The notes beneath the pieces were generated by a model. That model was not told the origin of the DNA and searched no databases. It was given only the letters and a program-made list of their open reading frames with translations. From the sequence record PV764601.1: a DNA stretch of 64,000 bases. One strand, given 5' to 3'. The position numbers and the translations under genes are program-made. Each line of letters begins with the position of its first letter. Within the stretch, counting starts at the first letter, position 1. Below, piece after piece: positions 21,850 to 63,035 of the stretch.

Positions 21850-21925
21850 TGGCGGACAAGGCAGGGGTCGAACCTGCGACGGCCGGATTAACAGTCCGGT
21901 GCTCTACCAGCTGAGCTACATGTCC
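21850..21925 (-). tRNA. trnN: tRNA-Asn (GTT), 76 nt, encoded CCA
   Basis: GGACATG TAGCTCAGCTGGTAGAGC A CCGGA CTGTTAA TCCGG CCGTC GCAGG TTCGACC CCTGC CTTGTCC G CCA: full cloverleaf with one U-U mismatch in the acceptor stem. Confidence 0.95.
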
Positions 21926-49917: not shown

Positions 49918-50223
49918 ATGGAAGTGCCATTGTTTGACGTAGAGAATAAAGGCGCGTCTACGGATCGCGTCAAAGAAAAGCTCCAGTCTATGGGTGTGGC
50001 ACGCTTCCACGCCACGGCAGTGCATGGCGCTGATCCTGTAAAGGTAGAGCGTGAACTGCTAATGTCGTTTGATCGCATGGAGCATCGTGCGGTTTATCGG
50101 CATTTGAGCAAGCACGATCCACTGGTCCATCGTCTGTGGTGGCCTGTGGTTGATTTCTTCCGAAATCTCAAGTACGACCTTTTCCGTCGCCGCAAGTTCC
50201 TGAGAACTCTGGACCAGCAATGA
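49918..50223 (+). CDS. Hypothetical protein
   Basis: Co-oriented, tightly packed. Confidence 0.55.
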   Translation: MEVPLFDVENKGASTDRVKEKLQSMGVARFHATAVHGADPVKVERELLMSFDRMEHRAVYRHLSKHDPLVHRLWWPVVDFFRNLKYDLFRRRKFLRTLDQQ

Positions 50224-50519
50224 AGAAGCAATCGGGCTTTACTCTGATCGAACTCATCATCGTAGTCGCAGTGATCGCCCTCTTGGCGATCTTCTTCCTA
50301 GGAGGTCCGCTGAAAACGCGAGCCTTCGGGCAGGGCAAGATGGTGGAGGCTCTGCACGCGCAGGGCTACACTGACGTTGAATACCTCGGTTATTCATGGC
50401 TAGGTTGCTCTGATGGCGACACCTTCCGCGCCAAGTTCCGCGCTACGTCCCCTCAAGGTGCCAAGGTAGAAGGCATAGCGTGTTCCGGTTTCATCAAAGG
50501 CACCACAATCCGCTGGTAA
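50220..50519 (+). CDS. Prepilin-type N-terminal cleavage/methylation protein (type IV pilin-like)
   Basis: MKKQSG|FTLIELIIVVAVIALLA class III signal with Glu5; two C-terminal Cys. Confidence 0.9.
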   Translation: MKKQSGFTLIELIIVVAVIALLAIFFLGGPLKTRAFGQGKMVEALHAQGYTDVEYLGYSWLGCSDGDTFRAKFRATSPQGAKVEGIACSGFIKGTTIRW

Positions 50520-50550: not shown

Positions 50551-52017
50551 ATGGGAATCATCGTCATCGGTATCGCAGTGCTCGTCATCCTTGCACTGCT
50601 TGCGATCATTTGCCTTTGGGCATTCGGTCGCCGCACTGTTGTCCCCACCAACGAAGTACACATTGTCCAGCAAGCCAAGGCTACCGTCAGCTACGGCAAG
50701 GACAAGGATGCAGGTAACGTCTATTACAAGTGGCCGGAATGGTTCCCGCGCATCGGTATGACTCGCCGCATCCTGCCGACTACCATGTTCAGCGTTCGCC
50801 TGAACGACTACGAGGCATACGATAAGGATCGGACTCCGTTCCGCATCGAAGTGGAAGCCTTCTTCCAGATCGCTGATTCGGACGTGGCGGCACAGAGCGT
50901 TGAGAACTTTGAGGAACTGACCTCCCAGCTGGAATCCATTGTCAAGGGTGCAGCGCGTTCGATGCTGGCGACCTACGACATTAACGAAATCATGACCGAG
51001 CGCAGCACGTTCGGTAAGGCTTTCACTGAGGACGTGCAACAGCAGCTTCCGGCGTGGGGTGTCAAGAGCGTCAAGTCCATCGAGTTGATGGATATTAAGG
51101 ACGCGCCGGGTCAGGAAGTCATTGCCAACATCATGGCAAAGAAGATTTCTCAGATCGAATCCGAAAGCCGTACTGAGGTCGCACGCAACCTGCGCACTGC
51201 TTCGCTGGTGGAAATCGAAGCCCAGCAGGAAGTGGAAATGCGTCGTCAGGAATCGGAAGAGACGATTGGTAAGCGCACCGCTGAGAAGGAAAAGACTGTT
51301 GGTATCGCTCGGGAGCGCACCCAGCAGGAAGTCTCGCAGGAAGCTGCGATCACCAAGACCCGCGAAATGGAAGTACGCAAGGTTGAGGAAGTGCGTGGCG
51401 CTGACATTCGCCGTGAAGTGAGTGTGGTCAAGGCAGAGGAAGATCGTCAGACCTCGGTCATCAACGCCGAAGCACAGCAGAAGACGGCCCTGATCGCCGC
51501 AACTGCGCAGAAGGAGTCGCAGGTTATTCGGGCAGAAGGTAACAAGCGTCAGATCGAGCTTGAGGCCGATGCAGCACTGACTCAGGCGCAGCGTGAGGCT
51601 GAGGGTATTCAGGCCCGAGGTGAAGCTGAGGCGGCGGCCGAGACTGCACGCTTGCGTGCCCCGGTCACCACTCAGATCGAACTGGCCAAGGAAATCGGTG
51701 AGAACCAAGGCTATCAGACGTACCTCCTGAGCGTGGAAAGCATCAACGCCACCAAGGAAGTCGGTATCGCTCAGGCCAAGGCTCTGGAAGGCGCAAGCGT
51801 CAAGGTCATCGCCAACACTGGAACCCCGACCGAAGGCATCAACAAGGTCTCCGGTCTGTTCGGCGCTGCGGGTGGCCTGAACATGGGCGCGATGGTTGAA
51901 AGCTTTGCCAACACCCCAGCGGGTGCTGCTGTCCTGAACCGTCTCGGTGTCAAGACGGAGGACGACACTACCCCGCCGTCCTCAAAGTCTCCGGATATTA
52001 TCCCTGACGAATACTAA
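50551..52017 (+). CDS. SPFH/flotillin-family membrane scaffold protein
   Basis: N-terminal TM, band-7 domain, AEA-rich flotillin coiled-coil. Confidence 0.9.
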   Translation: MGIIVIGIAVLVILALLAIICLWAFGRRTVVPTNEVHIVQQAKATVSYGKDKDAGNVYYKWPEWFPRIGMTRRILPTTMFSVRLNDYEAYDKDRTPFRIEVEAFFQIADSDVAAQSVENFEELTSQLESIVKGAARSMLATYDINEIMTERSTFGKAFTEDVQQQLPAWGVKSVKSIELMDIKDAPGQEVIANIMAKKISQIESESRTEVARNLRTASLVEIEAQQEVEMRRQESEETIGKRTAEKEKTVGIARERTQQEVSQEAAITKTREMEVRKVEEVRGADIRREVSVVKAEEDRQTSVINAEAQQKTALIAATAQKESQVIRAEGNKRQIELEADAALTQAQREAEGIQARGEAEAAAETARLRAPVTTQIELAKEIGENQGYQTYLLSVESINATKEVGIAQAKALEGASVKVIANTGTPTEGINKVSGLFGAAGGLNMGAMVESFANTPAGAAVLNRLGVKTEDDTTPPSSKSPDIIPDEY

Positions 52018-52057
52018 GTAACCCATAGGGCGCAGCAATGCGCCCTCACCATTCGGA

Positions 52058-52666
52058 GTGTTTGTGTCGTCCCCTACCTCGACCAAGAAAGTATTTAACG
52101 GGGTTGAAGCAACGTGCCTCAACTGTGAGAAGGCTACAGTGGATTGTTCTCCGATCCCTGCAAACGGAATCATGGAATGGAGTTGCCCTGTGTGTGGCCA
52201 TGACTACACCTTGCGTCTCTCCAACAACAAGGCGCAAATCGTAGCAACCGGAATACAGCGGATCAATGTGTTGGTCATGTTCAAGATCGACCGTGGCTCC
52301 GAAGACCCCATGTATATCGTCACTCGAAATCAGCTGGCTGCACGCACTGGCCATGAGCGCGACGAAATGCTGGAAGAGATTCGCAAGCTGCATTCCCTCC
52401 ACTACGGCCCCGAGAGTTGTATCAGTCAGGCCGCTGGCTTGGTAACGCTGGTCGGGGACGACACTCATCCGCACCACCTGTTTACCTACGTTGATTCCAT
52501 CATCGAGCCTACCCGAGAAGAGTATGCTGCGCTAATGGGCATGACGCAGGAAGACATGGACGAGATTGATCCAGAATACTTTGACCCATTCATTCTGGAT
52601 GGCCCTGTTCTACGCCGCCTATTCAAGCTAGACGGTAACACCACAAGCAAGAAGCATCTACACTAA
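52058..52666 (+). CDS. Zn-ribbon-containing hypothetical protein
   Basis: CLNC...CPVC; start uncertain. Confidence 0.55.
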   Translation: MFVSSPTSTKKVFNGVEATCLNCEKATVDCSPIPANGIMEWSCPVCGHDYTLRLSNNKAQIVATGIQRINVLVMFKIDRGSEDPMYIVTRNQLAARTGHERDEMLEEIRKLHSLHYGPESCISQAAGLVTLVGDDTHPHHLFTYVDSIIEPTREEYAALMGMTQEDMDEIDPEYFDPFILDGPVLRRLFKLDGNTTSKKHLH

Positions 52667-52676
52667 AGGAGTAAGC

Positions 52677-52952
52677 GTGAATCTGTATCCGTTCAAGTTC
52701 AAGTTGGGTGACGAGGTTGAAGTGATTACGACCCCGGTGCCTGCGTGTCTTCGTGAGGGCTGGGAGGAAGGCGCAGAGTCGATGATTTCCACCCGGAGCG
52801 GAAAAGTGGTGGCGCTGGAACTGTCGGCCAAGGGCACGACCGCAAGCATTGAATCCAACAAGAACGGGGAGCGCAAGCTCTTCCGCGAATTGGAAGGCAA
52901 CCTGCGCCCCAAGGGTTCGGGCCGACGCCTTGTGTTCGCGGGTCGTTCCTGA
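52677..52952 (+). CDS. Hypothetical protein
   Basis: AAGGAG RBS, GTG start; FKLGDEVEV SH3-like start. Confidence 0.6.
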   Translation: MNLYPFKFKLGDEVEVITTPVPACLREGWEEGAESMISTRSGKVVALELSAKGTTASIESNKNGERKLFRELEGNLRPKGSGRRLVFAGRS

Positions 52953-52961
52953 GAACACACG

Positions 52962-52990
52962 AAAGGGGTGGCCTAACGGCTGCCCCTTTT
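52962..52990 (+). terminator. Rho-independent terminator upstream of the modification operon
   Basis: aaaggggtggcc-taac-ggctgcccc followed by TTTT. Confidence 0.8.
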
Positions 52991-53038
52991 GCGTTTCCCG
53001 ATCCTGTAAATATAGACTGTATCCTCAAGGAGATTCCA

Positions 53039-53761
53039 ATGTCGGAACAAACTGTGATTGTGTTCAAGCCTGCCCACCTAGTCTATGCAGCTATTGAGGC
53101 TGGCCTCGGACCGATGCACTACATGCAGGCCCTCGTAAAGATTGAGCCCATGCTGAAAAGTATCGGTGTGGAAATCAAGATGGAGGAGGTGGACGGCGGT
53201 GCACAGGGAGACCGTGAGGTCAATCAACTTGTAGACGCCATCAATGAGTACAAGGCAGATCAGCTGGCTAGGGCCGAGGCTGCCAAGGTTCCCTTTACCT
53301 GCGAGGAAATCTACGCCATCGAAAACTTCGATAAGGTTGAGCCGGCCATTTACGCTCTGCGTGGCTTCTACTTCAACCATCTAAAGGGTGGCCTAGACGT
53401 AGAACTCAGCGACTTCGATATGGAGGCGCTTCACAAAGACACCGAGATTGAAGTGCGCGTCATCAAGGAATTCTTCTTCGATCCGCGCCGCTTCTGGAGG
53501 CTGGCTTCCGTGTGGTTCAAGGGCGAGCCTGTCATGGTCATTCAGAACGCCGGGCGCGAAGGTGACGACCACGCCAAGCGGTTCATCACGAATCGGGAAG
53601 CATTCGATGCTCTCTGCAAGCACCTGAACAGTTTCATTCAGCGCACGCCTTGGGACTCTGCTTCCATCGAAACAGACACCGTTGACGAAACTGCACACCT
53701 CGGTATGACCCTCACTGAATTCTATGGAAATGAACTGAATGGACACTTCGAGCGATACTAA
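53039..53761 (+). CDS. Hypothetical phage protein
   Basis: AAGGAG RBS; WRLASVWFKGEPVMVIQNAGREGDDH motif. Confidence 0.7.
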   Translation: MSEQTVIVFKPAHLVYAAIEAGLGPMHYMQALVKIEPMLKSIGVEIKMEEVDGGAQGDREVNQLVDAINEYKADQLARAEAAKVPFTCEEIYAIENFDKVEPAIYALRGFYFNHLKGGLDVELSDFDMEALHKDTEIEVRVIKEFFFDPRRFWRLASVWFKGEPVMVIQNAGREGDDHAKRFITNREAFDALCKHLNSFIQRTPWDSASIETDTVDETAHLGMTLTEFYGNELNGHFERY

Positions 53762-54572
53762 GATTCCGTTCAAGCTGTACGACTTGAACGACGTTCGCCA
53801 CATCAATGCGGAGCACTTCCCGCTGGATGATGACGACTACTGCTGGACAGTAGAAATGACGCCGCACCTTCTGTACGGTTTGGCCGACAGGGCACAGGCG
53901 CACCCTATGGGGTTCGTTGGCACGGAGGACGAACCCGAATGGATTTGGGAAGTCAGCGGTCGCCGCGCCGTGCTGCCTGTTGGTGGCCTGCACGTTTCCA
54001 AGACTACCGAGCAGTTCATTCGCAAGCAGGGTTGGGGCTACCAACTGAACGTCGGCTTCGACAAGGTGATCCACCACTGCGCTACGATTGAGCGCCCGGA
54101 AGACAAGGAAGAAGATGCAGACGAATACACGCAATGGCTCGACACTCCTACCCAGCGTTCGTACAAGGCCCTGCACTATGGCAAGGAGCGCAAGGCATAC
54201 TCGGTCACCGTGCTTAATACACAAGGCGAAATCGTAGGCGGTCTGTTCGGTCTGAACTTCCCCACCTACATTAGCGTCGATAGCATGTTCTCCCTAACTC
54301 CGAACGCATCCAAGGCTGCAATGGTTGCGCTGGACTTGTGGGCCGGTCAGGCTGGTAAGCGCCTTGTCGATATGGAAACGTTTGCCCCACACCTCGGTGC
54401 CCTTGGCGCTATGGATATGGATGGCCTGCACTTCCGCGATTGGGTTGAGCGCATCAAGAAGGACGCCGCTGCGAATGCCTCTGGGTTCAACCTCCCTTTG
54501 TTTGATGGCATTCAGGCCCTTGACGCCACGCAAGTATTCAACCACGCACGTTACCTGAGAACGAAGAAATGA
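53739..54572 (+). CDS. aat: Leucyl/phenylalanyl-tRNA-protein transferase homolog
   Basis: RRAVL..LHVSK, FDKVIHHCA, EIVGGLFG, SMFS..NASKAA, LVD..HL.ALGA align with the Aat motifs. Confidence 0.9.
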   Translation: MDTSSDTKIPFKLYDLNDVRHINAEHFPLDDDDYCWTVEMTPHLLYGLADRAQAHPMGFVGTEDEPEWIWEVSGRRAVLPVGGLHVSKTTEQFIRKQGWGYQLNVGFDKVIHHCATIERPEDKEEDADEYTQWLDTPTQRSYKALHYGKERKAYSVTVLNTQGEIVGGLFGLNFPTYISVDSMFSLTPNASKAAMVALDLWAGQAGKRLVDMETFAPHLGALGAMDMDGLHFRDWVERIKKDAAANASGFNLPLFDGIQALDATQVFNHARYLRTKK

Positions 54573-56206
54573 ATTACGGACTGCGCGAGTTTCGCACTGA
54601 TCGGGTGTTCGGCGAGCAGCATGTTGTCGCACCCACCGCTGACGTTGTGAAGCTCATCCCGAAGGCAAAGTTTGAGCAGTATCTGCATCGGGTCAAAGCA
54701 CTTGATGGTGTGGGCATCTTTGGTGACTTGCTGCCCACCTACGATGAATACATTTCGGTACTGCTGGCAAACTTTGTGCATCAAAGCGTGCTGGTGGTTA
54801 CGAATGTGTATGACCTGAACACCGGGCAGATGGTAGGCCACACGATCCTGCACGATCTGTGGAACACCCGCGATCCTCTCAAGCAGGCCAAGTTTGACCT
54901 GTTCGGTGCGAGCTACTTTGAAGTCAGCGTCCCACCGGCGCTGCCAGAGTTTCTGGATGACGTGTTTGAGCAGCTGCCGCCGTGCATGATCGTCAACTAC
55001 TTCCCGATCTACCCGCGTGAGTATGGTTATCAGGATGACAAATCCTATGGACTCTACATCCCCGAGTCGATGGAAAGCTACGTTGCCTCCCTGTCGAAGA
55101 AGAATCGGGAGAACTATCGTGCGGTGATGCGACTGAACGAAGGCATTCGGGTGGAGCAGGTTAGCCTGCGCGACGTGATGAAGTCTGCTGACTTCCACAA
55201 GAACTACACCGCCAACCTTGAGCGGTGGACCTACACCTCGGATGATAACGTCACCAACATCATCCACATCAACAACATGCTGCATAACCTTGAGGACCGT
55301 AATGCACTGGTCCTCAATATCTATGACGCAGACAACCGCCTCATCTGCACCAACATCGGTGAAGTGCGTGGCGCTGTGTACGTGGACAAGCTGGCTGTGC
55401 CGGGTGTAAGCTACGAAGAGTACAAGAAGCGGCGCATCGGCTTCCTCGCCATCTACGAGGCGATCCGATTCATCGTGGAAGAACTGCCGTTCGACGTGAA
55501 GTATTACCACCTCGACACCGAGGGTACGTACAAGGAAAAGTTCATCCCGGTAGGCTTTGAACTGCCCATCGTTCCCCTCGACTACGCCGTGGTGGACTCG
55601 GACTTCTGCGCAGGCAACTACTGCGCTGAGTACGGCTTTGAACCTCCGGTATACATCCGTGGTAAGGGATGGGAGTTGAAGAAGCTGGACAGCAAGTGGA
55701 ACGATCAGATCGACGTGTCGGAGATCAAGCTGGCTGAATTCCTCAAGCTGACTTCTGAACTGTTCGGGGAAGATGACCTCAACACCTTCGACCTTGAGAC
55801 GATCAATCAGCTGTCGCATATCCTGATGACGGCGCGTGAGGGCGGAAGTGTTCGGATTCTTGTCGCAAGGTGGCGTTATCGGAACCCCATCGGCTACATT
55901 GTTTTCAACCAATTTAATCCGAACGCCTATATCGACCTTGTGTACGTCACTGAGCAGATGCGTGGCCACGGTGTCGGTAGGCAGATGATGCAAAAGGCGT
56001 TCGCGCTGCTGTCGAATGAATTTGACGGCGTTGCCCTGCACACTTCGGTTACCAACGACCCTGCCAAGCGCCTGTATCGTGCCCTCGGGTTTGAGCAGAG
56101 CCTGCCTGTCGTAGGCTACTACGATGACAAGACAGATTCGTTTGGTAATGACCTTGATAGCACGGACGCATTCTACTACTACAAGAGGTTGAAGCATGAA
56201 GATTGA
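54569..56206 (+). CDS. Two-domain GNAT protein (FemABX/Acetyltransf_6-like plus C-terminal classical GNAT)
   Basis: SMESYVASLSKKNRENYR; C-terminal LVYVTEQMRGHGVGRQMM..NDPAKRLYRALGF. Confidence 0.8.
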   Translation: MNYGLREFRTDRVFGEQHVVAPTADVVKLIPKAKFEQYLHRVKALDGVGIFGDLLPTYDEYISVLLANFVHQSVLVVTNVYDLNTGQMVGHTILHDLWNTRDPLKQAKFDLFGASYFEVSVPPALPEFLDDVFEQLPPCMIVNYFPIYPREYGYQDDKSYGLYIPESMESYVASLSKKNRENYRAVMRLNEGIRVEQVSLRDVMKSADFHKNYTANLERWTYTSDDNVTNIIHINNMLHNLEDRNALVLNIYDADNRLICTNIGEVRGAVYVDKLAVPGVSYEEYKKRRIGFLAIYEAIRFIVEELPFDVKYYHLDTEGTYKEKFIPVGFELPIVPLDYAVVDSDFCAGNYCAEYGFEPPVYIRGKGWELKKLDSKWNDQIDVSEIKLAEFLKLTSELFGEDDLNTFDLETINQLSHILMTAREGGSVRILVARWRYRNPIGYIVFNQFNPNAYIDLVYVTEQMRGHGVGRQMMQKAFALLSNEFDGVALHTSVTNDPAKRLYRALGFEQSLPVVGYYDDKTDSFGNDLDSTDAFYYYKRLKHED

Positions 56207-57071
56207 GATTCATTCCCAAACTGAGAACGACGCATCCTCGCAACTGAGTCCGAATTCCAAGAGCCTGCCTGAACTGGTCAACGCGCTGTCCTATCTGGCA
56301 TCGCTGGACGGCAACTACACGCTGCAAGGTGTGCCGAGTTCGTGGGCTCCACTGCTGACCTACCTGCGCTTCGCTATCGGCAGCACCACGGTCGAACTGC
56401 AAGGCGATGAGATTGTTGGTCCTGCATGGCAGGCAGCAGACTACGGCCGCAACATGACCGAAGTTGTGTTGGAAGCCATGTGTGCCATCCGCCCTGAAAC
56501 CTCCATCGTGCTGCGTCTGCTGGATTCGGAAACGCCCATCCCGCAGTCGCGCAGGGGCTACGAGTTCGCCGAGCCCGAGCACGATTTCGTGTCTAACCCT
56601 GTGATGGCAGAGCGTCGTGCCAAGGTCATCGGTATCGAAGCTGCTAGGGAACTGTACGCTCCCACGCGACCGCACGTGCTGGTTGTTCCAAATAATCCTG
56701 AAATCATCGAGTTGACTCAGAACCTCCTGACCCAACTCGGTATTCGTGACAAGTGGTATCTGCTGATCCTCGACGGCGCTGCTGGTATCGTGCCGGAAGA
56801 CCTGAGTAATCTGCTACCGGACCAGCATTACTCTGTGTGGGATGACACCTATAAACAAATGTGGAACATCCGAGACTACTTCTCGCGTACCTTCCACACT
56901 GCGGTGGTGTCTTACGTCAAGGGCGCACAGGTTACGGCAGTGGAATACGGCGTCAGCTACAGCACGTTCAGAGGCTCCCTGTTCCATGCGCGTACTGACC
57001 GCGACCTGACTCACCCCGAAAGTATTCTCAAGCTGCGCCATGCACTGCTAAATAACACCGCAAAGGAATAA
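56196..57071 (+). CDS. Hypothetical protein, possible DUF5591/ArcS-like C-terminal domain
   Basis: VLVVP...LLILDGAAGIVPEDL..LLP.QHY resembles the DUF5591 G-V-V-P-x-E-L...P...H-Y pattern (by-eye match only). Confidence 0.45.
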   Translation: MKIEIHSQTENDASSQLSPNSKSLPELVNALSYLASLDGNYTLQGVPSSWAPLLTYLRFAIGSTTVELQGDEIVGPAWQAADYGRNMTEVVLEAMCAIRPETSIVLRLLDSETPIPQSRRGYEFAEPEHDFVSNPVMAERRAKVIGIEAARELYAPTRPHVLVVPNNPEIIELTQNLLTQLGIRDKWYLLILDGAAGIVPEDLSNLLPDQHYSVWDDTYKQMWNIRDYFSRTFHTAVVSYVKGAQVTAVEYGVSYSTFRGSLFHARTDRDLTHPESILKLRHALLNNTAKE

Positions 57072-57073
57072 CC

Positions 57074-58117
57074 ATGCACGTAATGACTGCCGAGCATTAC
57101 ATTGAACGTTTCGGATGTTCAAATTCGATCTACCCTGAGCTAGATAAGGACGTGCAAGCACAGTGGGTAAAGCTCCGCAGAAAGCTTGCACCTTCCTATG
57201 CGGACAAGCCGCTGTACGTGAGCACGGACGGCTCAATCGCTGTTGAGTCTTACCCGGACGGAACCCTGTACGCAGGGTTCACCAACATGGGGATGGCAAC
57301 CGGCTTCATGTTAGGTACGGTCGATCAAATCAAGAACACCTTGATCGACCTGTCTCAATCCATCCCAACCTTTGAGCAGGATAATGCAGTTGTCGCACCT
57401 CCTGCCCTTGACTGCCCACATAGATACGGCGAAGACTTCCCCCGGGAAATCTACTCGCTCAAGTCAGACGTGGTGTATCTCGGGTATCGTGATCGCGCCG
57501 GAGTCATGACGTGGGATGAATATCTCACGTCCCTGTCCACTAAGCGTAGGGCACAAGTACGGCAGAAGCTGCGCGTATCCGAGCACCTCACGTTTGAGGT
57601 CGAGCCCTTGTTCGACTATGAGATTCCAGTCATCGCCGAGTGGATGCAGGAACATTGGAGTGCGCAGACAGCGGAGACGTGCTCGACGTGGCATCCGCTG
57701 GTAGTGGAAGGTTCGCTGTTACCGCTGGCAATGTCGGTGGCTGCTGGTTCAGGGTGCGATACCATCAAGGTTTACGATGGCTTGCGCCTTGTGGCAGTCG
57801 GTACGTTCGTGAAGCGCGTCAATCGTCGCGTCTTCGTTGGCTTCTTCAAGGACTCGACCTACGATGCTCCGAATGGGTTGGGTACTGCGGTGCTGGCGCA
57901 TGCTGTGCAGTATTACCTACAGCGGCCGGAGACGGGGACCGCCATCATTGATACCACATTGGCTGCTGACTTTGTGGAAGGGCACACCTACAGTCAGTAC
58001 AAGCGTCCCGTGTGTAATGACACGATGACGTATGCAGGTATCGCAATCTGTTCGGCCACCCCCAAAGAGAAAATGTGGCCTCCCTACTACCAAGCAGGAG
58101 CATGGGTTTATGAGTAA
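57074..58117 (+). CDS. FemABX/Acetyltransf_6-like GNAT protein
   Basis: TWDEYLTSLSTKRRAQVRQKLR, GLGTAVLAHAV, YSQYKR. Confidence 0.7.
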   Translation: MHVMTAEHYIERFGCSNSIYPELDKDVQAQWVKLRRKLAPSYADKPLYVSTDGSIAVESYPDGTLYAGFTNMGMATGFMLGTVDQIKNTLIDLSQSIPTFEQDNAVVAPPALDCPHRYGEDFPREIYSLKSDVVYLGYRDRAGVMTWDEYLTSLSTKRRAQVRQKLRVSEHLTFEVEPLFDYEIPVIAEWMQEHWSAQTAETCSTWHPLVVEGSLLPLAMSVAAGSGCDTIKVYDGLRLVAVGTFVKRVNRRVFVGFFKDSTYDAPNGLGTAVLAHAVQYYLQRPETGTAIIDTTLAADFVEGHTYSQYKRPVCNDTMTYAGIAICSATPKEKMWPPYYQAGAWVYE

Positions 58118-58904
58118 CGTTCGCGCAGCCTTCGAGAAGTACCGTGTATACCGCGAGGTTCTGGCGCGCAATAAGGGCCTACCCTTCAAGCCGGTCGCTG
58201 CACCGAATGGCTTTACCGTTGAGGAGGTCCATACCGAGGACGCAGGGGCCATCCTTGTTCCTATGGGCGACACTGAGTTCCCTGCCTTCTACGATGAGGT
58301 TCTGAACTTGTCGGACAATCTGGCGCACACGATGCGTCCAGAGGTTCGTGTTATTGCAAGCCGTCCCAGCTTTGAGGCGCACCTGCAATCGCTGTCGCAG
58401 TTGAAGCGCAGCTGGAAGAACACGGCCCACCTCATGTTCCATCCCGCGCGTGGTGGAGAGTTTGACCAGTTCAAGGCTGGACTCATCCACATCATCGTCT
58501 CGAACCTGCAACACTTCAATCCGGGCATGACGTTTGAAGGTGCGACAGAAACGGCGGTGGCATACCTTGAGTACATCGCTGCATGGTCGCTGATTCCCAA
58601 CAGTGACGTGGTGCTGGTTTTCCGTCCTAGCGAGGATGGCAAGTTCACCCCATGCGGCATTGGCATGTTCCAAATGTGCCCAGAGAACGATGAGTATCAC
58701 TGGGTCAACACGTTGCTCCTGCGTGACCAATACGCCAAGGAGTACACCATCGGGAACGTAATGCTCCTGCAAGCCCTGCGCCTGTGCTACAAGGCGAACG
58801 TGCTGTATCTCAACCTCGGCCTCGCCGTCTTCGACTACAAGAAGACGTGGAAGCCCATTCCTTTTGAGCGCAAGGTTCCGGTCTTGCTCGACCCCACGGA
58901 GTAA
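58110..58904 (+). CDS. FemABX/Acetyltransf_6-like GNAT protein
   Basis: ATG 58110 after AGGAG; SFEAHLQSLSQLKR, IGNVMLLQAL..YLNLGLAVFDYKKTW. Confidence 0.75.
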   Translation: MSNVRAAFEKYRVYREVLARNKGLPFKPVAAPNGFTVEEVHTEDAGAILVPMGDTEFPAFYDEVLNLSDNLAHTMRPEVRVIASRPSFEAHLQSLSQLKRSWKNTAHLMFHPARGGEFDQFKAGLIHIIVSNLQHFNPGMTFEGATETAVAYLEYIAAWSLIPNSDVVLVFRPSEDGKFTPCGIGMFQMCPENDEYHWVNTLLLRDQYAKEYTIGNVMLLQALRLCYKANVLYLNLGLAVFDYKKTWKPIPFERKVPVLLDPTE

Positions 58905-58909
58905 CCCAC

Positions 58910-60433
58910 ATGTGTTCCATTTTCGGTGTCCATAACCTGCGTTGGTCTGACGCACAGCAGAAGCGCGTCGTCTTCAACGCACTGATGACGCTGGCTGTTG
59001 AAAGTTGCGAGCGTGGCCGTGATGCAATGGGCTACGCTGCCTTCATCACGTCGCTTGATGGCACCACGCATCGCGTGTTCCAGCGTCAGTCTTTCCGTTC
59101 GATTCGGGATACTCATCCTGACCTCAATGCACGTGCACTGGCTGTAATCAGTCAGGTGCAGATCATGATGCGCAACCTCGACGCCATGACTCCGAACGAG
59201 GTGAGAAGTTTCACCCTGATCGCAAACTGCCGAGCCGAGCCGACTACTGAATGGCTACAGGACCAGCGCGAGGATGACATTCAGCCCTACGCCAACTGGC
59301 CCTCTGAACGCTATTTCGCTGTGCATAACGGCGTCATCGCCAACGATGCGCAATTCATCCCGGAACATTCCCGCACCAAGGTGGATAGCGCTGCGATTCC
59401 CTACGCGATTGAGCGTGGTGAGTTTGAAAGCCTGATCGGTTCTGTTGCGTCAGCGGTCTACGACGTGGAGACTGATACGCTGTGGCTCGCCCGCAACTAT
59501 CGGCCCCTCTCCGCTGTGTGCCCTAGCTTTGGCTTCCATGAAAACGGCGCTGCGGTAGTATTCGCCAGTGAGCGGCAGGCCATTACGCGTGCACTGTTTC
59601 GTGACGGCATGTATACCGATTACCCAATCGCCGCCAACTCGACTTGGAAGTTCAACGGCCACATCGACCGGAACTCTTTCTTCGTAGGCAAGGCGGCAAC
59701 CACTCGCTTCGACAAGGACCCGAACGGCGGCAACCCTGAGAGCGCCATCGTGATCCTGTCCGGTGGTATGGACAGCACGGTTAGTGCAGAAATCGCATGC
59801 CGGGATCACACCAACATCGTGCTCGCTCACTTCCATTATGGTTGCCGGGCACAGACGCGCGAGACGGAGGCAGTGACGGCTATTCATGCTGCACTGGTTG
59901 AGCGTCATCCTCGGAAGACGATCACCCTCAAGTTCTTCGACCTCGACTTCCTCAAGCAGCTGGGTGGCAACCCGCTGGTGGACGACACGATGGAAGTGGC
60001 AACCGGCAAGGACGGCATCGAGTACGCGAATGAATGGGTGCCGTTCCGTAATGGCCTGATGGTCGCCATGATGGCAGCGTATGCTGATCGGTGGAGCTTC
60101 GGTGCAATCTACACCGGCGCCAATCTTGAAGAAGCAGGTGCTTTCGGGGACAATGAAAAGGAATTCTTCGACCTGATGGAGAAGGCAATCGCCATTGGCT
60201 CCAAGGCCGCTCCGAAGTTGGTCAACCCTCTGGACAAGCTGATGAAGCATGAGGTGGCACAGACGGGTCTGATGCTGGAAGCGCCAATTCACCTTAGCTG
60301 GAGTTGCTACCACGGCGGTGAGCTTCATTGCGGAAACTGTGGGCCATGCCAGCTGAGGCGAACCGCGTTTGCCATGATTGGTAAGGACGATCCTGTAAAG
60401 TATATGCAGGACGCGCCGCTAGTAGGACTGTGA
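58910..60433 (+). CDS. queC: Gat-QueC: class II glutamine amidotransferase fused to 7-cyano-7-deazaguanine synthase-like domain
   Basis: N-terminal MCSIFG, RGRD, NCRAEPT, VHNGVIAN, VDS; PP-loop SGGMDS, VPFRN, SWSCY..HCGNCGPCQLR Zn motif. Confidence 0.9.
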   Translation: MCSIFGVHNLRWSDAQQKRVVFNALMTLAVESCERGRDAMGYAAFITSLDGTTHRVFQRQSFRSIRDTHPDLNARALAVISQVQIMMRNLDAMTPNEVRSFTLIANCRAEPTTEWLQDQREDDIQPYANWPSERYFAVHNGVIANDAQFIPEHSRTKVDSAAIPYAIERGEFESLIGSVASAVYDVETDTLWLARNYRPLSAVCPSFGFHENGAAVVFASERQAITRALFRDGMYTDYPIAANSTWKFNGHIDRNSFFVGKAATTRFDKDPNGGNPESAIVILSGGMDSTVSAEIACRDHTNIVLAHFHYGCRAQTRETEAVTAIHAALVERHPRKTITLKFFDLDFLKQLGGNPLVDDTMEVATGKDGIEYANEWVPFRNGLMVAMMAAYADRWSFGAIYTGANLEEAGAFGDNEKEFFDLMEKAIAIGSKAAPKLVNPLDKLMKHEVAQTGLMLEAPIHLSWSCYHGGELHCGNCGPCQLRRTAFAMIGKDDPVKYMQDAPLVGL

Positions 60434-61038
60434 TGAAAGCACTGATTGTAATGGCCCACCCGGATGACAGTTTCATTTTCGGCCACAACATCCGGCAGGC
60501 CACGCCTCATATCGAGTGGCACGATCTATGTGCCACTTACGGTCATCGCACTGCACGCGGCAAGGAATTCCTTGCCGCCTGTAAGGTGTTGAAATCGAGG
60601 GGTATCCAGCTTGCGTTGGACGACGATTACCAAGGCACGCTGACCGAGGACACTGCGCTGCTGGTGGAGAACATCTATCAGCAGTTGCACAATGGGTACA
60701 ACTACCTCGTAACGCACAACCCGAACGGTGAGTATGGCCACCGCCATCATCGGGAACTACACAAGCACACCATGCTCGCGTGGTCGATGCTGCCAGTCAA
60801 GGAGCGCCCATCCGTGCTGGTGCCTGCATTCAACTACAAGGTGCCGGACTTCACGCTCTACAGCGAAACCAAAGCCAAGAGCAAGTGCCTGCAAATCTAC
60901 GAGCGCGAAATGTATATGATCGGCAACTTCGATCTGATTGCAGAGTCGTTCGTGTTGCATGAAAAGGGAGAGCGCGGACCGTCGCTTCATGTTGAGGTAA
61001 CTCGCAGCCTCCACCACCGAAAGTTCAAAGAGGATTGA
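60433..61038 (+). CDS. PIG-L/LmbE-family deacetylase
   Basis: AHPDD and THNPNGEYGHRHH motifs; TGATG coupling. Confidence 0.9.
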   Translation: MKALIVMAHPDDSFIFGHNIRQATPHIEWHDLCATYGHRTARGKEFLAACKVLKSRGIQLALDDDYQGTLTEDTALLVENIYQQLHNGYNYLVTHNPNGEYGHRHHRELHKHTMLAWSMLPVKERPSVLVPAFNYKVPDFTLYSETKAKSKCLQIYEREMYMIGNFDLIAESFVLHEKGERGPSLHVEVTRSLHHRKFKED

Positions 61039-61040
61039 AA

Positions 61041-62144
61041 GTGAAGAAGATCATTGTAGTTCGCAGTCCTGAGTCGGACTTCCGCCCTGAGAAGTGGATC
61101 ACTAACAAGGTGATCGCCGCCCTCCGCCAAACCGCAGCAGACAAGACTCGGACCCTCAACGGTCATGAGTTTGAAGTCGTTGAGGTGAACAGCGGCGAAG
61201 AATTCAACAGCATGTCGTCGCAGTCCATGTTCTATTCCGACGAGACGATGACCAAATCGTTCTGCAAGGGTGTGCTGGGTGTGCTGGATCACATCGCTGA
61301 TGGCGACGTGGTTTACTTTGCCGATGGTTGGTCGCCTGCCGTTCCGGTGCTCAAGTTCCACATGCACTGCGCAGGCATCAAGGCCCACCTGACCGGCTTC
61401 TTCCATAGCAGCGTTGAGACTCCGGGTGACTTCCTGTATTCGGCAGGCTCGTGGGTACGCAGCCTCGAAGAAACCCTGCTGGATTGTTTCACCGAAACCT
61501 ACGTAGCTACCGATTATGGAGTGGACCTACTAAACTCCACCAACGTCAACGTCATTGGCCTGCCGGTCATTAGCCCACAAGATACCAACCCTGCGCAGCT
61601 GCGCCGTTCGCTGACTGCGCGTGCTGAAGAGGCAAAGCCTGTCGTGGGCTGGAGCCATCGTTGGGCAGAGGATAAGCGCCCCGAAGACTTCATCGAACTG
61701 GCCCATCGTCTTGGCGACACCCGCACCTTCCGCGTTCTGCACCCGGTTCCCCTCGACACCGCACCGCTGTATCAGGAAGCGGTGGATGCAGGTATTGAGT
61801 TCGTCCTATGTGATACCAAGGACAAGTATTGGACCGAGGTGGCGAAACTGAGTTTCCTGTTTAGCTCTGCAACGCTGGAGACTTTCGGTTACAGCGTTAT
61901 TGATGCAGTGGTCCTAGGCGCGATTCCGGTAGTGCCCAACCGCGCGTGCTACCCATACATGTACCGCGACGAGCACCTGTACTACACGCTGGAAGATGCA
62001 GCCCAACTCCTGAGTAAGGATTGGGTACGCCACACTCTGTTCGACGTGTTGAGGGCCCCAGTGTTCGTGCAGGTCAACGCATTTGAGCACACGATTACCA
62101 CTCGCCTGACTAAGTTGCTCGACAACGACCGCTACCCGAACTAA
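61041..62144 (+). CDS. GT-B glycosyltransferase (GT4-like)
   Basis: HRWAEDKRP and ETFGYSVIDAV..GAIPVVP..YP donor-binding motifs; GTG start after GAGGA (alternative TTG 61035). Confidence 0.9.
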   Translation: MKKIIVVRSPESDFRPEKWITNKVIAALRQTAADKTRTLNGHEFEVVEVNSGEEFNSMSSQSMFYSDETMTKSFCKGVLGVLDHIADGDVVYFADGWSPAVPVLKFHMHCAGIKAHLTGFFHSSVETPGDFLYSAGSWVRSLEETLLDCFTETYVATDYGVDLLNSTNVNVIGLPVISPQDTNPAQLRRSLTARAEEAKPVVGWSHRWAEDKRPEDFIELAHRLGDTRTFRVLHPVPLDTAPLYQEAVDAGIEFVLCDTKDKYWTEVAKLSFLFSSATLETFGYSVIDAVVLGAIPVVPNRACYPYMYRDEHLYYTLEDAAQLLSKDWVRHTLFDVLRAPVFVQVNAFEHTITTRLTKLLDNDRYPN

Positions 62145-62147
62145 GCA

Positions 62148-62996
62148 ATGGCTCGCATTGGAATTGTAGGGGGCCTTGGCGTGGGTAAAGCTCACGCCAT
62201 CGCTGCCTTGAATCTCGGACATACGCTGTCCTTTGTCGTAGACGTGGACCCCAAGGCTAGTGAAGTCTACAGCAGATCGGTGCTGGTTAATCAATGGGGT
62301 TCGTTCTATGAAGAAGCTGTGCTGGAGCGTCAGGTTCCAGTATACAAAACACTGACTGGCGCAATGATGAGTACGTGGAATGCTCCGGACCTCATTATCA
62401 TCGCCACGCCAGATAGCACTCATGACCTGTTAGTGAGGCAAGCGGTACAATGCTTCCCTGAGTCTCGCGTGCTGTGTGAGAAGCCGTATAAGTCAGACGT
62501 GATTGATGATCGTGTGCTTGTTTCCGCCGAATGGATTTACCATTCCAAGCTGGCAGGCGTGCACGACCCCATCACGGCGCTGGCTATGTACCACAACAAC
62601 ATGCCTACCGATGGTTCTCCGTGGAACCACGTAATCAAGTACGACCTAGGCTTCCACCTGATGAGCATCATCGGATGGCAGCGTGGCTTCGACGTGGCTG
62701 CAAAGGTAGATCATGCTGCAACCACTCCAGTAAATTGGGGTGGTGAAGTTCAAGTGCTAGGGTTCGATGATGTGATCGAAGTAGCCGCAATGTACAATCC
62801 GAATGCAGCAGGCGTAACAGAGTTGATAGGTGCGCCCCTGATAGAGGATGCGGAAATAATCGTCCGTCATGGCGATACCACTACGTACTTGGATTGGGAA
62901 GCCCCGTTGTTTGAACGGCAGATTTCCTCAGTCCTACGTGGCGTGCACCCGGTCACTAGCAAGGTGGCTGTGGGCATCGACTTCAAACTAGGCTGA
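62148..62996 (+). CDS. Gfo/Idh/MocA-family NAD(P)-dependent oxidoreductase
   Basis: RIGIVGGLGVGKAH, IATPDSTH, VLCEKP. Confidence 0.85.
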   Translation: MARIGIVGGLGVGKAHAIAALNLGHTLSFVVDVDPKASEVYSRSVLVNQWGSFYEEAVLERQVPVYKTLTGAMMSTWNAPDLIIIATPDSTHDLLVRQAVQCFPESRVLCEKPYKSDVIDDRVLVSAEWIYHSKLAGVHDPITALAMYHNNMPTDGSPWNHVIKYDLGFHLMSIIGWQRGFDVAAKVDHAATTPVNWGGEVQVLGFDDVIEVAAMYNPNAAGVTELIGAPLIEDAEIIVRHGDTTTYLDWEAPLFERQISSVLRGVHPVTSKVAVGIDFKLG

Positions 62997-63000
62997 ATTT

Positions 63001-63035
63001 AGGGGCTGCCGGGAGCGATCTTGGTGGCCCCTTTT
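63001..63035 (+). terminator. Terminator closing the operon
   Basis: aggggctgcc...ggtggcccc followed by TTTT. Confidence 0.7.

Follow-up and report, generated by a model that had tools for sequence, protein, structure and literature searches.

An Aat-family transferase with altered acceptor-side residues in a putative amino-sugar/7-deazaguanine tailoring operon of Xanthomonas phage PhiXhv-12

The only characterized activity of the Aat family (leucyl/phenylalanyl-tRNA-protein transferases) is aminoacyl transfer to protein N termini. For the Escherichia coli enzyme, Watanabe reportedly proposed in 2007 that Q188 is part of a catalytic relay (D186/Q188). The Leu or Phe side chain is held in a hydrophobic pocket made up of M144, F153, L170, F173, and I185 (PMC4964394), and a passage of the same source, citing Suto 2006, gives E156 and Q188 as the residues proposed to anchor the Arg or Lys side chain of the acceptor and so to define acceptor specificity. 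Charged tRNAs are also used by other enzymes. The GNAT enzyme Mom of phage Mu carries out a Gly-tRNA-dependent modification of adenine in DNA (published in 2026; PMC13219725), and FemABX-like aminoacyl-tRNA transferases (Orf11 of BD-12, PacB, VlmA, DhpH-C, and DhpK) act in natural-product pathways, where Orf11 aminoacylates an amino sugar using Gly-tRNA (PMC12945691). In addition, eight 7-deazaguanine derivatives have been described in phage DNA (PMC10516641). Here, we describe an Aat-like gene in a 64,000-nucleotide stretch of sequence record PV764601.1, referred to as the window, from the Xanthomonas jumbo myovirus PhiXhv-12 (227.6 kb; window identity, 100%). The gene lies in a ten-gene operon (Table 1), and its product may have been recruited to aminoacylate an amine that does not belong to a protein.

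The Aat-like protein matches Pfam Leu_Phe_trans (PF03588) with an E value of 2.2e-29 and 102.6 bits (cut-off, 22.7), spanning profile positions 16 to 170 of 171, and matches the E. coli Aat structures 2z3k, 2cxa, and 2dps at 2e-13. It is thus the clear Aat homolog that had been claimed from the sequence, and its GenBank product name is "leucyl/phenylalanyl-tRNA--protein transferase." As in E. coli Aat, one GNAT domain is combined with a non-GNAT N-terminal domain, and the fold family, the invariant core, D186, S157-M158-F159, and a hydrophobic aminoacyl pocket are all shared. However, the phage protein is only 24% identical to the E. coli enzyme, has extra residues at both termini, and contains an acidic insert around residues 119 to 131. 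The genetic settings also differ: E. coli aat lies near clpS-clpA, whereas the phage gene is embedded in a biosynthetic operon.

Residue correspondence was established in a 13-sequence alignment of E. coli Aat with the Aat-like protein and relatives. All thirteen invariant columns are kept in the phage protein, including D186 (D211); the other kept core residues are W58, R64, C102, W111, G142, G143, G146, S157, M158, K167, H193, and G198. F159 is retained as well. Replaced are Q188 (E213), C187 (M212), E156 (D181), and G155 (V180), and the original prediction, in which DME was read for the E. coli DCQ motif and VDSMFS for GESMFS, agrees with the alignments residue by residue. Its phrase "substituted active-site residues" is apt for Q188 of the D186/Q188 pair and overstated for D186, which is intact. 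The same prediction considered that a different amino acid might be transferred. Donor-pocket changes, however, are all hydrophobic and conservative (M144L at L169, F153I at I178, L170M at M195, F173L at L198, and I185V at V210), which speaks against that idea, and because the pocket is still hydrophobic, Leu/Phe/Met-type donors would stay the default. With E156 and Q188 replaced and the donor pocket conserved, it is therefore the acceptor side that has been hit and not the donor side. Both acceptor-side replacements are still acidic or polar. E. coli W49, which stacks on A76, aligns with M57 of the phage protein in a part of the N-terminal domain where the alignment is unreliable. On the NCBIfam equivalog model TIGR00667, the protein scores 77.5 bits against a cut-off of 143.55. 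Because the acceptor residues differ from those of E. coli Aat and the score falls under this cut-off, its sequence places the protein in the Aat fold family without making it an equivalog of characterized Aat.

To assess how rare the substitutions are, 1.84 billion cluster representatives (50% identity clusters) were searched exhaustively with HMMER, which returned 1,166 family members. Residue statistics cover the best 150 of these 1,166 matches, the window protein, and five word-search matches (156 in total); the canonical sample among them consists of the 143 representatives outside the phage clade, which are among those closest to the query and are biased toward it. Q occupies the Q188 column in 141 of the 156, and E occupies it in 4, namely, three PhiXhv-lineage proteins and one aberrant 552-amino-acid protein. 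The E156 column holds E in 145 and D in 7, and V is found in the G155 column in 13 proteins, among them all members of the phage-like clade. The substitutions are therefore rare, and such variants are not common in canonical Aat. In a FastTree phylogeny of 145 full-length representatives, the PhiXhv lineage falls within a nine-protein clade (support, 1.0), the remaining members of which all come from phage-like metagenomic contigs; a TVESMF form is common to this clade. The six members outside the PhiXhv lineage all have Q188, and five of the six have E156 (P0009 has D). D181 and E213 are both retained in an 80%-identical homologue from an independent metagenome (P0003, encoded at locus L008). 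Among the 156 representatives, Q188E is specific to the operon-carrying lineage, one aberrant protein aside, and this pattern indicates that the substitutions are not chance variation.

Between the gene and its L008 orthologue, the ratio of nonsynonymous to synonymous substitution rates (dN/dS) is 0.116 at a dS of approximately 1.07, the lowest ratio in the operon. Given this low dN/dS and the conservation of both the donor pocket and the invariant core, we regard an active enzyme with a changed acceptor as probable. A catalytically dead protein, or an Aat relic with a purely structural or regulatory role, would account for the replacement of the proposed relay residue Q188 and for the Met aligned with W49, the latter in an uncertain part of the alignment. 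Such a protein would hardly be expected to keep all thirteen invariant columns, D186 included, or to show a dN/dS of this size across so much synonymous divergence, and at the Q188 site Glu is competent both as a base and as a partner for hydrogen bonds. The gene is unlikely to be decaying or to encode a remnant with a structural role alone, and we consider a dead or regulatory Aat copy highly improbable overall.

The genomic setting of the Aat-like gene offers further insight into its role. Ten genes on the same strand are bracketed by two hairpins, the first of which is probably the terminator of the preceding unit and marks the left operon boundary. AAGGAG lies 8 nucleotides ahead of the first operon ATG at 53039. 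The end of o240 overlaps the start of the Aat-like gene by 23 nucleotides, and the stop codon of the Aat-like gene overlaps the ATG of o545 (ATGA), an arrangement from which we read the gene as translationally coupled within the ten-gene unit. In the diverged relative, whose Aat-like protein is 80% identical, the full set of ten genes is syntenic. Our favored reading, held with middling confidence, is that the Aat-like protein carries out tRNA-dependent aminoacyl transfer to a non-protein amine of a 7-deazaguanine/amino-sugar hypermodification. We favor it because the gene is coupled within a conserved biosynthetic operon and both E156 and Q188 are changed, and because the operon pairs a deazaguanine-forming enzyme with enzyme types that make or decorate amino sugars. 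A non-protein acceptor was one of two roles put forward in the original prediction, and it is the better supported by the hairpin-bounded operon and the altered acceptor residues, whereas the transfer of another amino acid, proposed along with it, is not. The other proposed role, redirected ClpS-ClpAP proteolysis, gained no positive support: ClpS was not found in the PhiXhv-12 genome, and the gene is not among host-takeover genes.

Several points weigh against a non-protein acceptor, and some of them favor a protein-directed transferase, which would add Leu or Phe to the N termini of host or phage proteins, create N-degrons for host ClpS-ClpAP or serve some other fate, and occupy its place in the operon incidentally. 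The Aat family has no known non-protein acceptor, in that the 2026 review of aminoacyl-tRNA-dependent enzymes names none (PMC12945691), and transfer to protein N termini would keep to what the family is known to do. The D181/E213 pocket stays acidic and is still compatible with an N-terminal Arg or Lys. In the phage-like clade, the other six members sit in varied neighborhoods with neither QueC nor a common partner, mostly solitary among small phage open reading frames (ORFs) with no biosynthetic partner, and because of these varied contexts, the ancestral role of the clade may be on proteins. The published description of the phage discusses neither the Aat-like gene nor DNA modification. For the TGT-like and QueE-like proteins, o347, o264, and o367, the assignments fall short of curated cut-offs or are motif based, four operon proteins are without a firm family assignment, and AlphaFold2 models of o347 and o291, built on alignments of two or three sequences, were unusable (mean predicted local distance difference test score, approximately 35). 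Nevertheless, a protein-directed enzyme would leave several observations unexplained. The gene is tightly coupled on both sides in a biosynthetic operon whose genes are conserved together, the changes specific to the lineage hit precisely the residues that define the acceptor and go along with operon recruitment, the phage genome lacks ClpS, and the TIGR00667 score is well below the equivalog cut-off. We therefore regard transfer to protein N termini as fairly unlikely and retain the non-protein amine as the favored acceptor.

The base to which such an amine could belong is suggested by the deazaguanine genes of the phage. The QueC domain of the operon-encoded Gat-QueC is clearly recognizable, and the whole protein shares 33% identity, from end to end, with Gat-QueC of 9g-like dG+ phages. 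Its GenBank name, "L-glutamine-D-fructose-6-phosphate aminotransferase," looks wrong and was inherited from phrog_10428. Outside the operon, the PhiXhv-12 genome encodes FolE (96 bits) and QueD (60 bits), both above cut-off, as well as a QueE-like radical-SAM enzyme (PV764601.1, 11391 to 12290), the best matches of which are five QueE models, all subthreshold; the GenBank name for this gene, "GTP 3',8-cyclase," also looks wrong. A TGT-like ORF of 568 amino acids (PV764601.1, 216554 to 218260) lies outside the window; its matches to TgtA (7.8e-7) and tgt_general (9e-4) both fall below cut-off, and homologues in phages that share 38% identity with it carry TGT-domain annotations. FolE, QueD, a QueE-like enzyme, Gat-QueC, and a candidate TGT paralogue are present, as in the described phage deazaguanine pathways, such as those for dG+ in 9g and dPreQ0 in CAjan (PMC6884629 and PMC10516641). 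Unlike in those pathways, Gat-QueC of PhiXhv-12 stands apart from the other pathway genes, among sugar and aminoacyl/acyl transferases, none of which is found among the eight described derivatives or their enzymes (PMC10516641).

A related possibility is that the aminoacyl group is likewise transferred to a non-protein amine, with a product other than modified DNA: a queuosine-like base in tRNA or a free 7-deazapurine/amino-sugar metabolite. The sole tRNA encoded by the phage is a tRNA-Asn(GTT) (window positions 21850 to 21925, minus strand), which belongs to the four queuosine-type (GUN) tRNAs modified by TGT enzymes, so that phage tRNA-Asn(GUU) could itself be the target. Queuosines decorated with sugars or amino acids occur in tRNA as mannosyl-, galactosyl-, and glutamyl-queuosine. 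The best curated match of the TGT-like protein is the archaeal tRNA enzyme TgtA, and glycosylated preQ0 metabolites such as huimycin are reported to exist. On the other hand, phage FolE, QueD, and QueE plus Gat-QueC, accompanied by a TGT paralogue, have so far meant DNA modification (PMC6884629 and PMC10516641), and the full-length homology of Gat-QueC is to the proteins of dG+ phages. A tRNA base or free metabolite as the end product is, in our view, quite unlikely. The published explanation for the phage tRNA-Asn is codon usage, and a link to deazaguanine genes is not considered there. We also considered the aminomethyl group of preQ1 as the acceptor, a candidate that is weakened by the absence of QueF from the PhiXhv-12 genome, though the host may supply QueF.

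For the amino-sugar half of the proposed product, the closest parallel is the synthesis of mycothiol and bacillithiol, in which a GT4 glycosyltransferase (MshA/BshA), a PIG-L enzyme (MshB/BshB), an amino-acid ligase (MshC/BshC), and, for mycothiol, a two-domain GNAT (MshD) act in order. PIG-L-family enzymes unmask the amine of GlcNAc-type sugars. The pathway proposed for the operon has the same order of enzyme types, from a GT4-like glycosyltransferase through PIG-L and amino-acid addition to the freed amine to GNAT acetylation, and a profile search gave weak MshB and MshD matches among the operon proteins. The resemblance is in logic only: in the thiol pathways, an ATP-dependent CysRS paralogue adds the amino acid, which does not come from aminoacyl-tRNA, and the scaffold is inositol or malate and not a deazapurine.

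Combining these features, we propose that FolE, QueD, the QueE-like enzyme, and Gat-QueC would supply a 7-deazaguanine base, to a derivative of which the GT4-like glycosyltransferase would attach an amino sugar. PIG-L deacetylation would free the amine of that sugar, and the Aat-like enzyme, recruited to the tailoring operon, would take a Leu/Phe/Met-type aminoacyl group from host aminoacyl-tRNA and form an amide with this primary amine, a non-protein acceptor made by the products of neighboring genes. D181 and E213 may have been reshaped to hold such a cationic, non-peptide acceptor. The aminoacyl group could then be lengthened or capped by the Fem/BioF2-like paralogues and the acetyl-GNAT module, and insertion of the base into nucleic acid, probably phage DNA, would fall to the TGT-like enzyme. 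The order of these steps is equally provisional.

Mom of phage Mu provides a functional precedent for this role, as a phage GNAT-superfamily enzyme that uses charged tRNA as the acyl donor for nucleic-acid hypermodification. Mom belongs to another GNAT family, however, and works alone and directly on adenine N6 in double-stranded DNA, whereas the Aat-like enzyme is one among the roughly ten products of its operon, and its acceptor would be an appended amine rather than the base. The FemABX-like transferases also form amides on small-molecule amines from aminoacyl-tRNA, and the acceptor type of Orf11 is the one proposed here, but all of them are double-GNAT Fem-type enzymes, and none belongs to the Aat family (PMC12945691). 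The Aat-like protein has neither the double-GNAT architecture nor the [FYW]-K-x-x-[FWYP] motif. The same review lists Fem-type GNATs among its classes and leaves Aat-family enzymes unnamed (PMC12945691).

Closer to the FemABX type than the Aat-like protein itself are the N-terminal module of o545, o347, and o264. In the ESM Atlas, PF13480 is assigned at 0.95 in 22 of 30 matches to o347, and BLAST aligns o347 with residues 124 to 202 of o545 at an E value of 0.008, a weak sign of paralogy. The o264 protein shares an N-terminal S-x-E-x-[YH]-[LV]-x-S-L-S motif and, toward the C terminus, a Lys motif with the Acetyltransf_6-like paralogues. Fem-likeness is thus supported by sequence comparison for the o545 N-terminal module and o347, and at the motif level only for o264. 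In a more speculative extension, which we think rather improbable, the Aat-like enzyme would act with the acetyl-GNAT and as many as three Fem/BioF2-like paralogues to build a short, tRNA-derived aminoacyl or peptidyl chain on an amino-sugar-7-deazaguanine in phage DNA. If true, such a glyco-peptidyl guanine hypermodification would give the Aat family its first acceptor other than a protein and would be a second kind of tRNA-dependent DNA hypermodification, after Mom. The neighboring o291 was considered as an ArcS-like enzyme that adds lysine and whose product would mimic an N-terminal Lys for the Aat-like enzyme; its matches reach E values of approximately 0.03 to 0.06 only, and we treat this as a lead and not as a claim. 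The gene is fast evolving, with 42% identity to its L008 orthologue, and o291 had no match in the ESM Atlas.

The other members of the phage-like clade may point to further chemistries. One is encoded directly after a PurA/PurZ-like adenylosuccinate synthetase (1.7e-39), another directly before a GARS_A-type ATP-grasp protein, and a third near an R2K ATP-grasp protein (the loci near amino-acid-ligating enzymes are L011, 8772 to 10831; L019, 1440 to 3598; and L017, 5323 to 7750). These ligase neighbors may reflect other amino-acid or nucleotide chemistries in phages. A simple history that fits these facts is one in which a phage Aat clade had some stand-alone role and a single branch, recruited to the operon, had its acceptor residues changed. 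The sole neighbor conserved between clade members is a small ORF of 58 to 90 amino acids, 70% identical and just 3' of the Aat-like gene in two metagenomic phages that are related (L010, 3408 to 3584; L011, 10993 to 11265). The 305-amino-acid genes beside two other clade members were considered and discarded, being not homologous.

Table 1. Genes and hairpins of the PhiXhv-12 operon (window positions)
Feature	Position	Strand	Basis or remarks
Hairpin at left boundary	52965..52996	+	9-bp stem (two G-U pairs), 4-nt loop, then T-run; found by eye, absent from consensus scan
o240, first operon gene	53039..53761	+	C-terminal domain (aa 87-240) is phrog_8664
Aat-like aminoacyl-tRNA-dependent transferase	53739..54572	+	ATG start, 277 aa; PF03588 match
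o545, two-module GNAT	54569..56206	+	Acetyltransf_6 (BioF2/Fem-like), aa 178-305; acetyl-CoA-type GNAT, aa 427-510
o291	56196..57071	+	Weak ArcS-core matches: DUF5591, E 0.056; NF040592, E 0.03
o347, probable Acetyltransf_6 (Fem/BioF2-like) paralogue	57074..58117	+	ESM Atlas, BLAST, shared motifs
o264, possible third Acetyltransf_6-like paralogue	58110..58904	+	Motif level only, without family match
Gat-QueC, class-II glutamine amidotransferase fused to QueC	58910..60433	+	QueC domain, 2e-49, 168-171 bits
PIG-L/LmbE-family de-N-acetylase	60430..61038	+	31.2 bits (cut-off, 28.2)
o367, probable GT-B (GT4-like) glycosyltransferase	61041..62144	+	E-x7-D/E type motif, aa 280-288; GenBank name
o282, GFO/IDH/MocA-family NAD(P) oxidoreductase (sugar dehydrogenase type)	62148..62996	+	Last of the ten genes
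Strong terminator-like hairpin at right boundary	63001..63032	+	14 pairs (8 G-C), T-run; consensus scan

Beyond the assignments in Table 1, other searches returned little. The o367 protein gave no profile match and a weak PDB match only, and nothing significant came from searching the PDB by sequence and by profile with o291, o347, o367, and o264. No relationship was found by hhalign among the shallow operon alignments, and the QueC domain was the sole PADLOC match. All operon proteins are acidic, so that isoelectric point and charge do not discriminate between them. A candidate promoter word 5' of the operon did not recur. No PHROG family matched the Aat-like protein, a word-indexed protein search with the Aat-like protein, o347, and o291 recovered the PhiXhv lineage only, and IMG/VR scans with the Aat-like protein and o291 found no relatives. 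Neither a phage Aat nor the PhiXhv-12 operon turned up as reported in our literature searches.

Just upstream of the operon, the window encodes a protein that resembles type IV pilins and has an N-terminal methylation motif (50220 to 50519; 9e-9) and a 488-amino-acid SPFH/Band 7 protein (50551 to 52017; 2e-19). The phrog_8664 domain of o240 stands alone, at about 140 amino acids, in unrelated phages, including Vibrio VH-8, Acinetobacter phiAB441, Bacillus Bcp1, Xanthomonas Xoo-sp15, and the Lactococcus 949 group, where the neighborhoods are uninformative. Four sister genomes are 96 to 99% identical to window positions 52000 to 58000, the 6-kb stretch compared. The sequencing libraries available for these phages are all of the Illumina type. 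Among database entries, OQ603353.1 ("Xanthomonas phage Ep026"; 227,420 bp) and OQ603359.1 ("Erwinia phage Ep032"; 227,296 bp) are near-identical genomes, both 96.4% identical to the window, with listed hosts from different orders, so that either the host range is very broad or the labeling is at fault.

If the favored reading is true, the Aat/L-F-transferase family would not be limited to protein N termini, its sole acceptor type so far, and the phage enzyme would represent a second use of charged tRNAs in phage nucleic-acid hypermodification, Mom being the first. The lineage-specific pair of E156D and Q188E provides a testable handle on acceptor specificity in this fold. A far more elaborate member would also join the eight known 7-deazaguanine derivatives of phage DNA, with a bearing on restriction and CRISPR evasion and on enzymes for site-specific DNA decoration. 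As PhiXhv phages are in development for biocontrol of lettuce leaf spot, DNA hypermodification would matter for predictions of host range and resistance.

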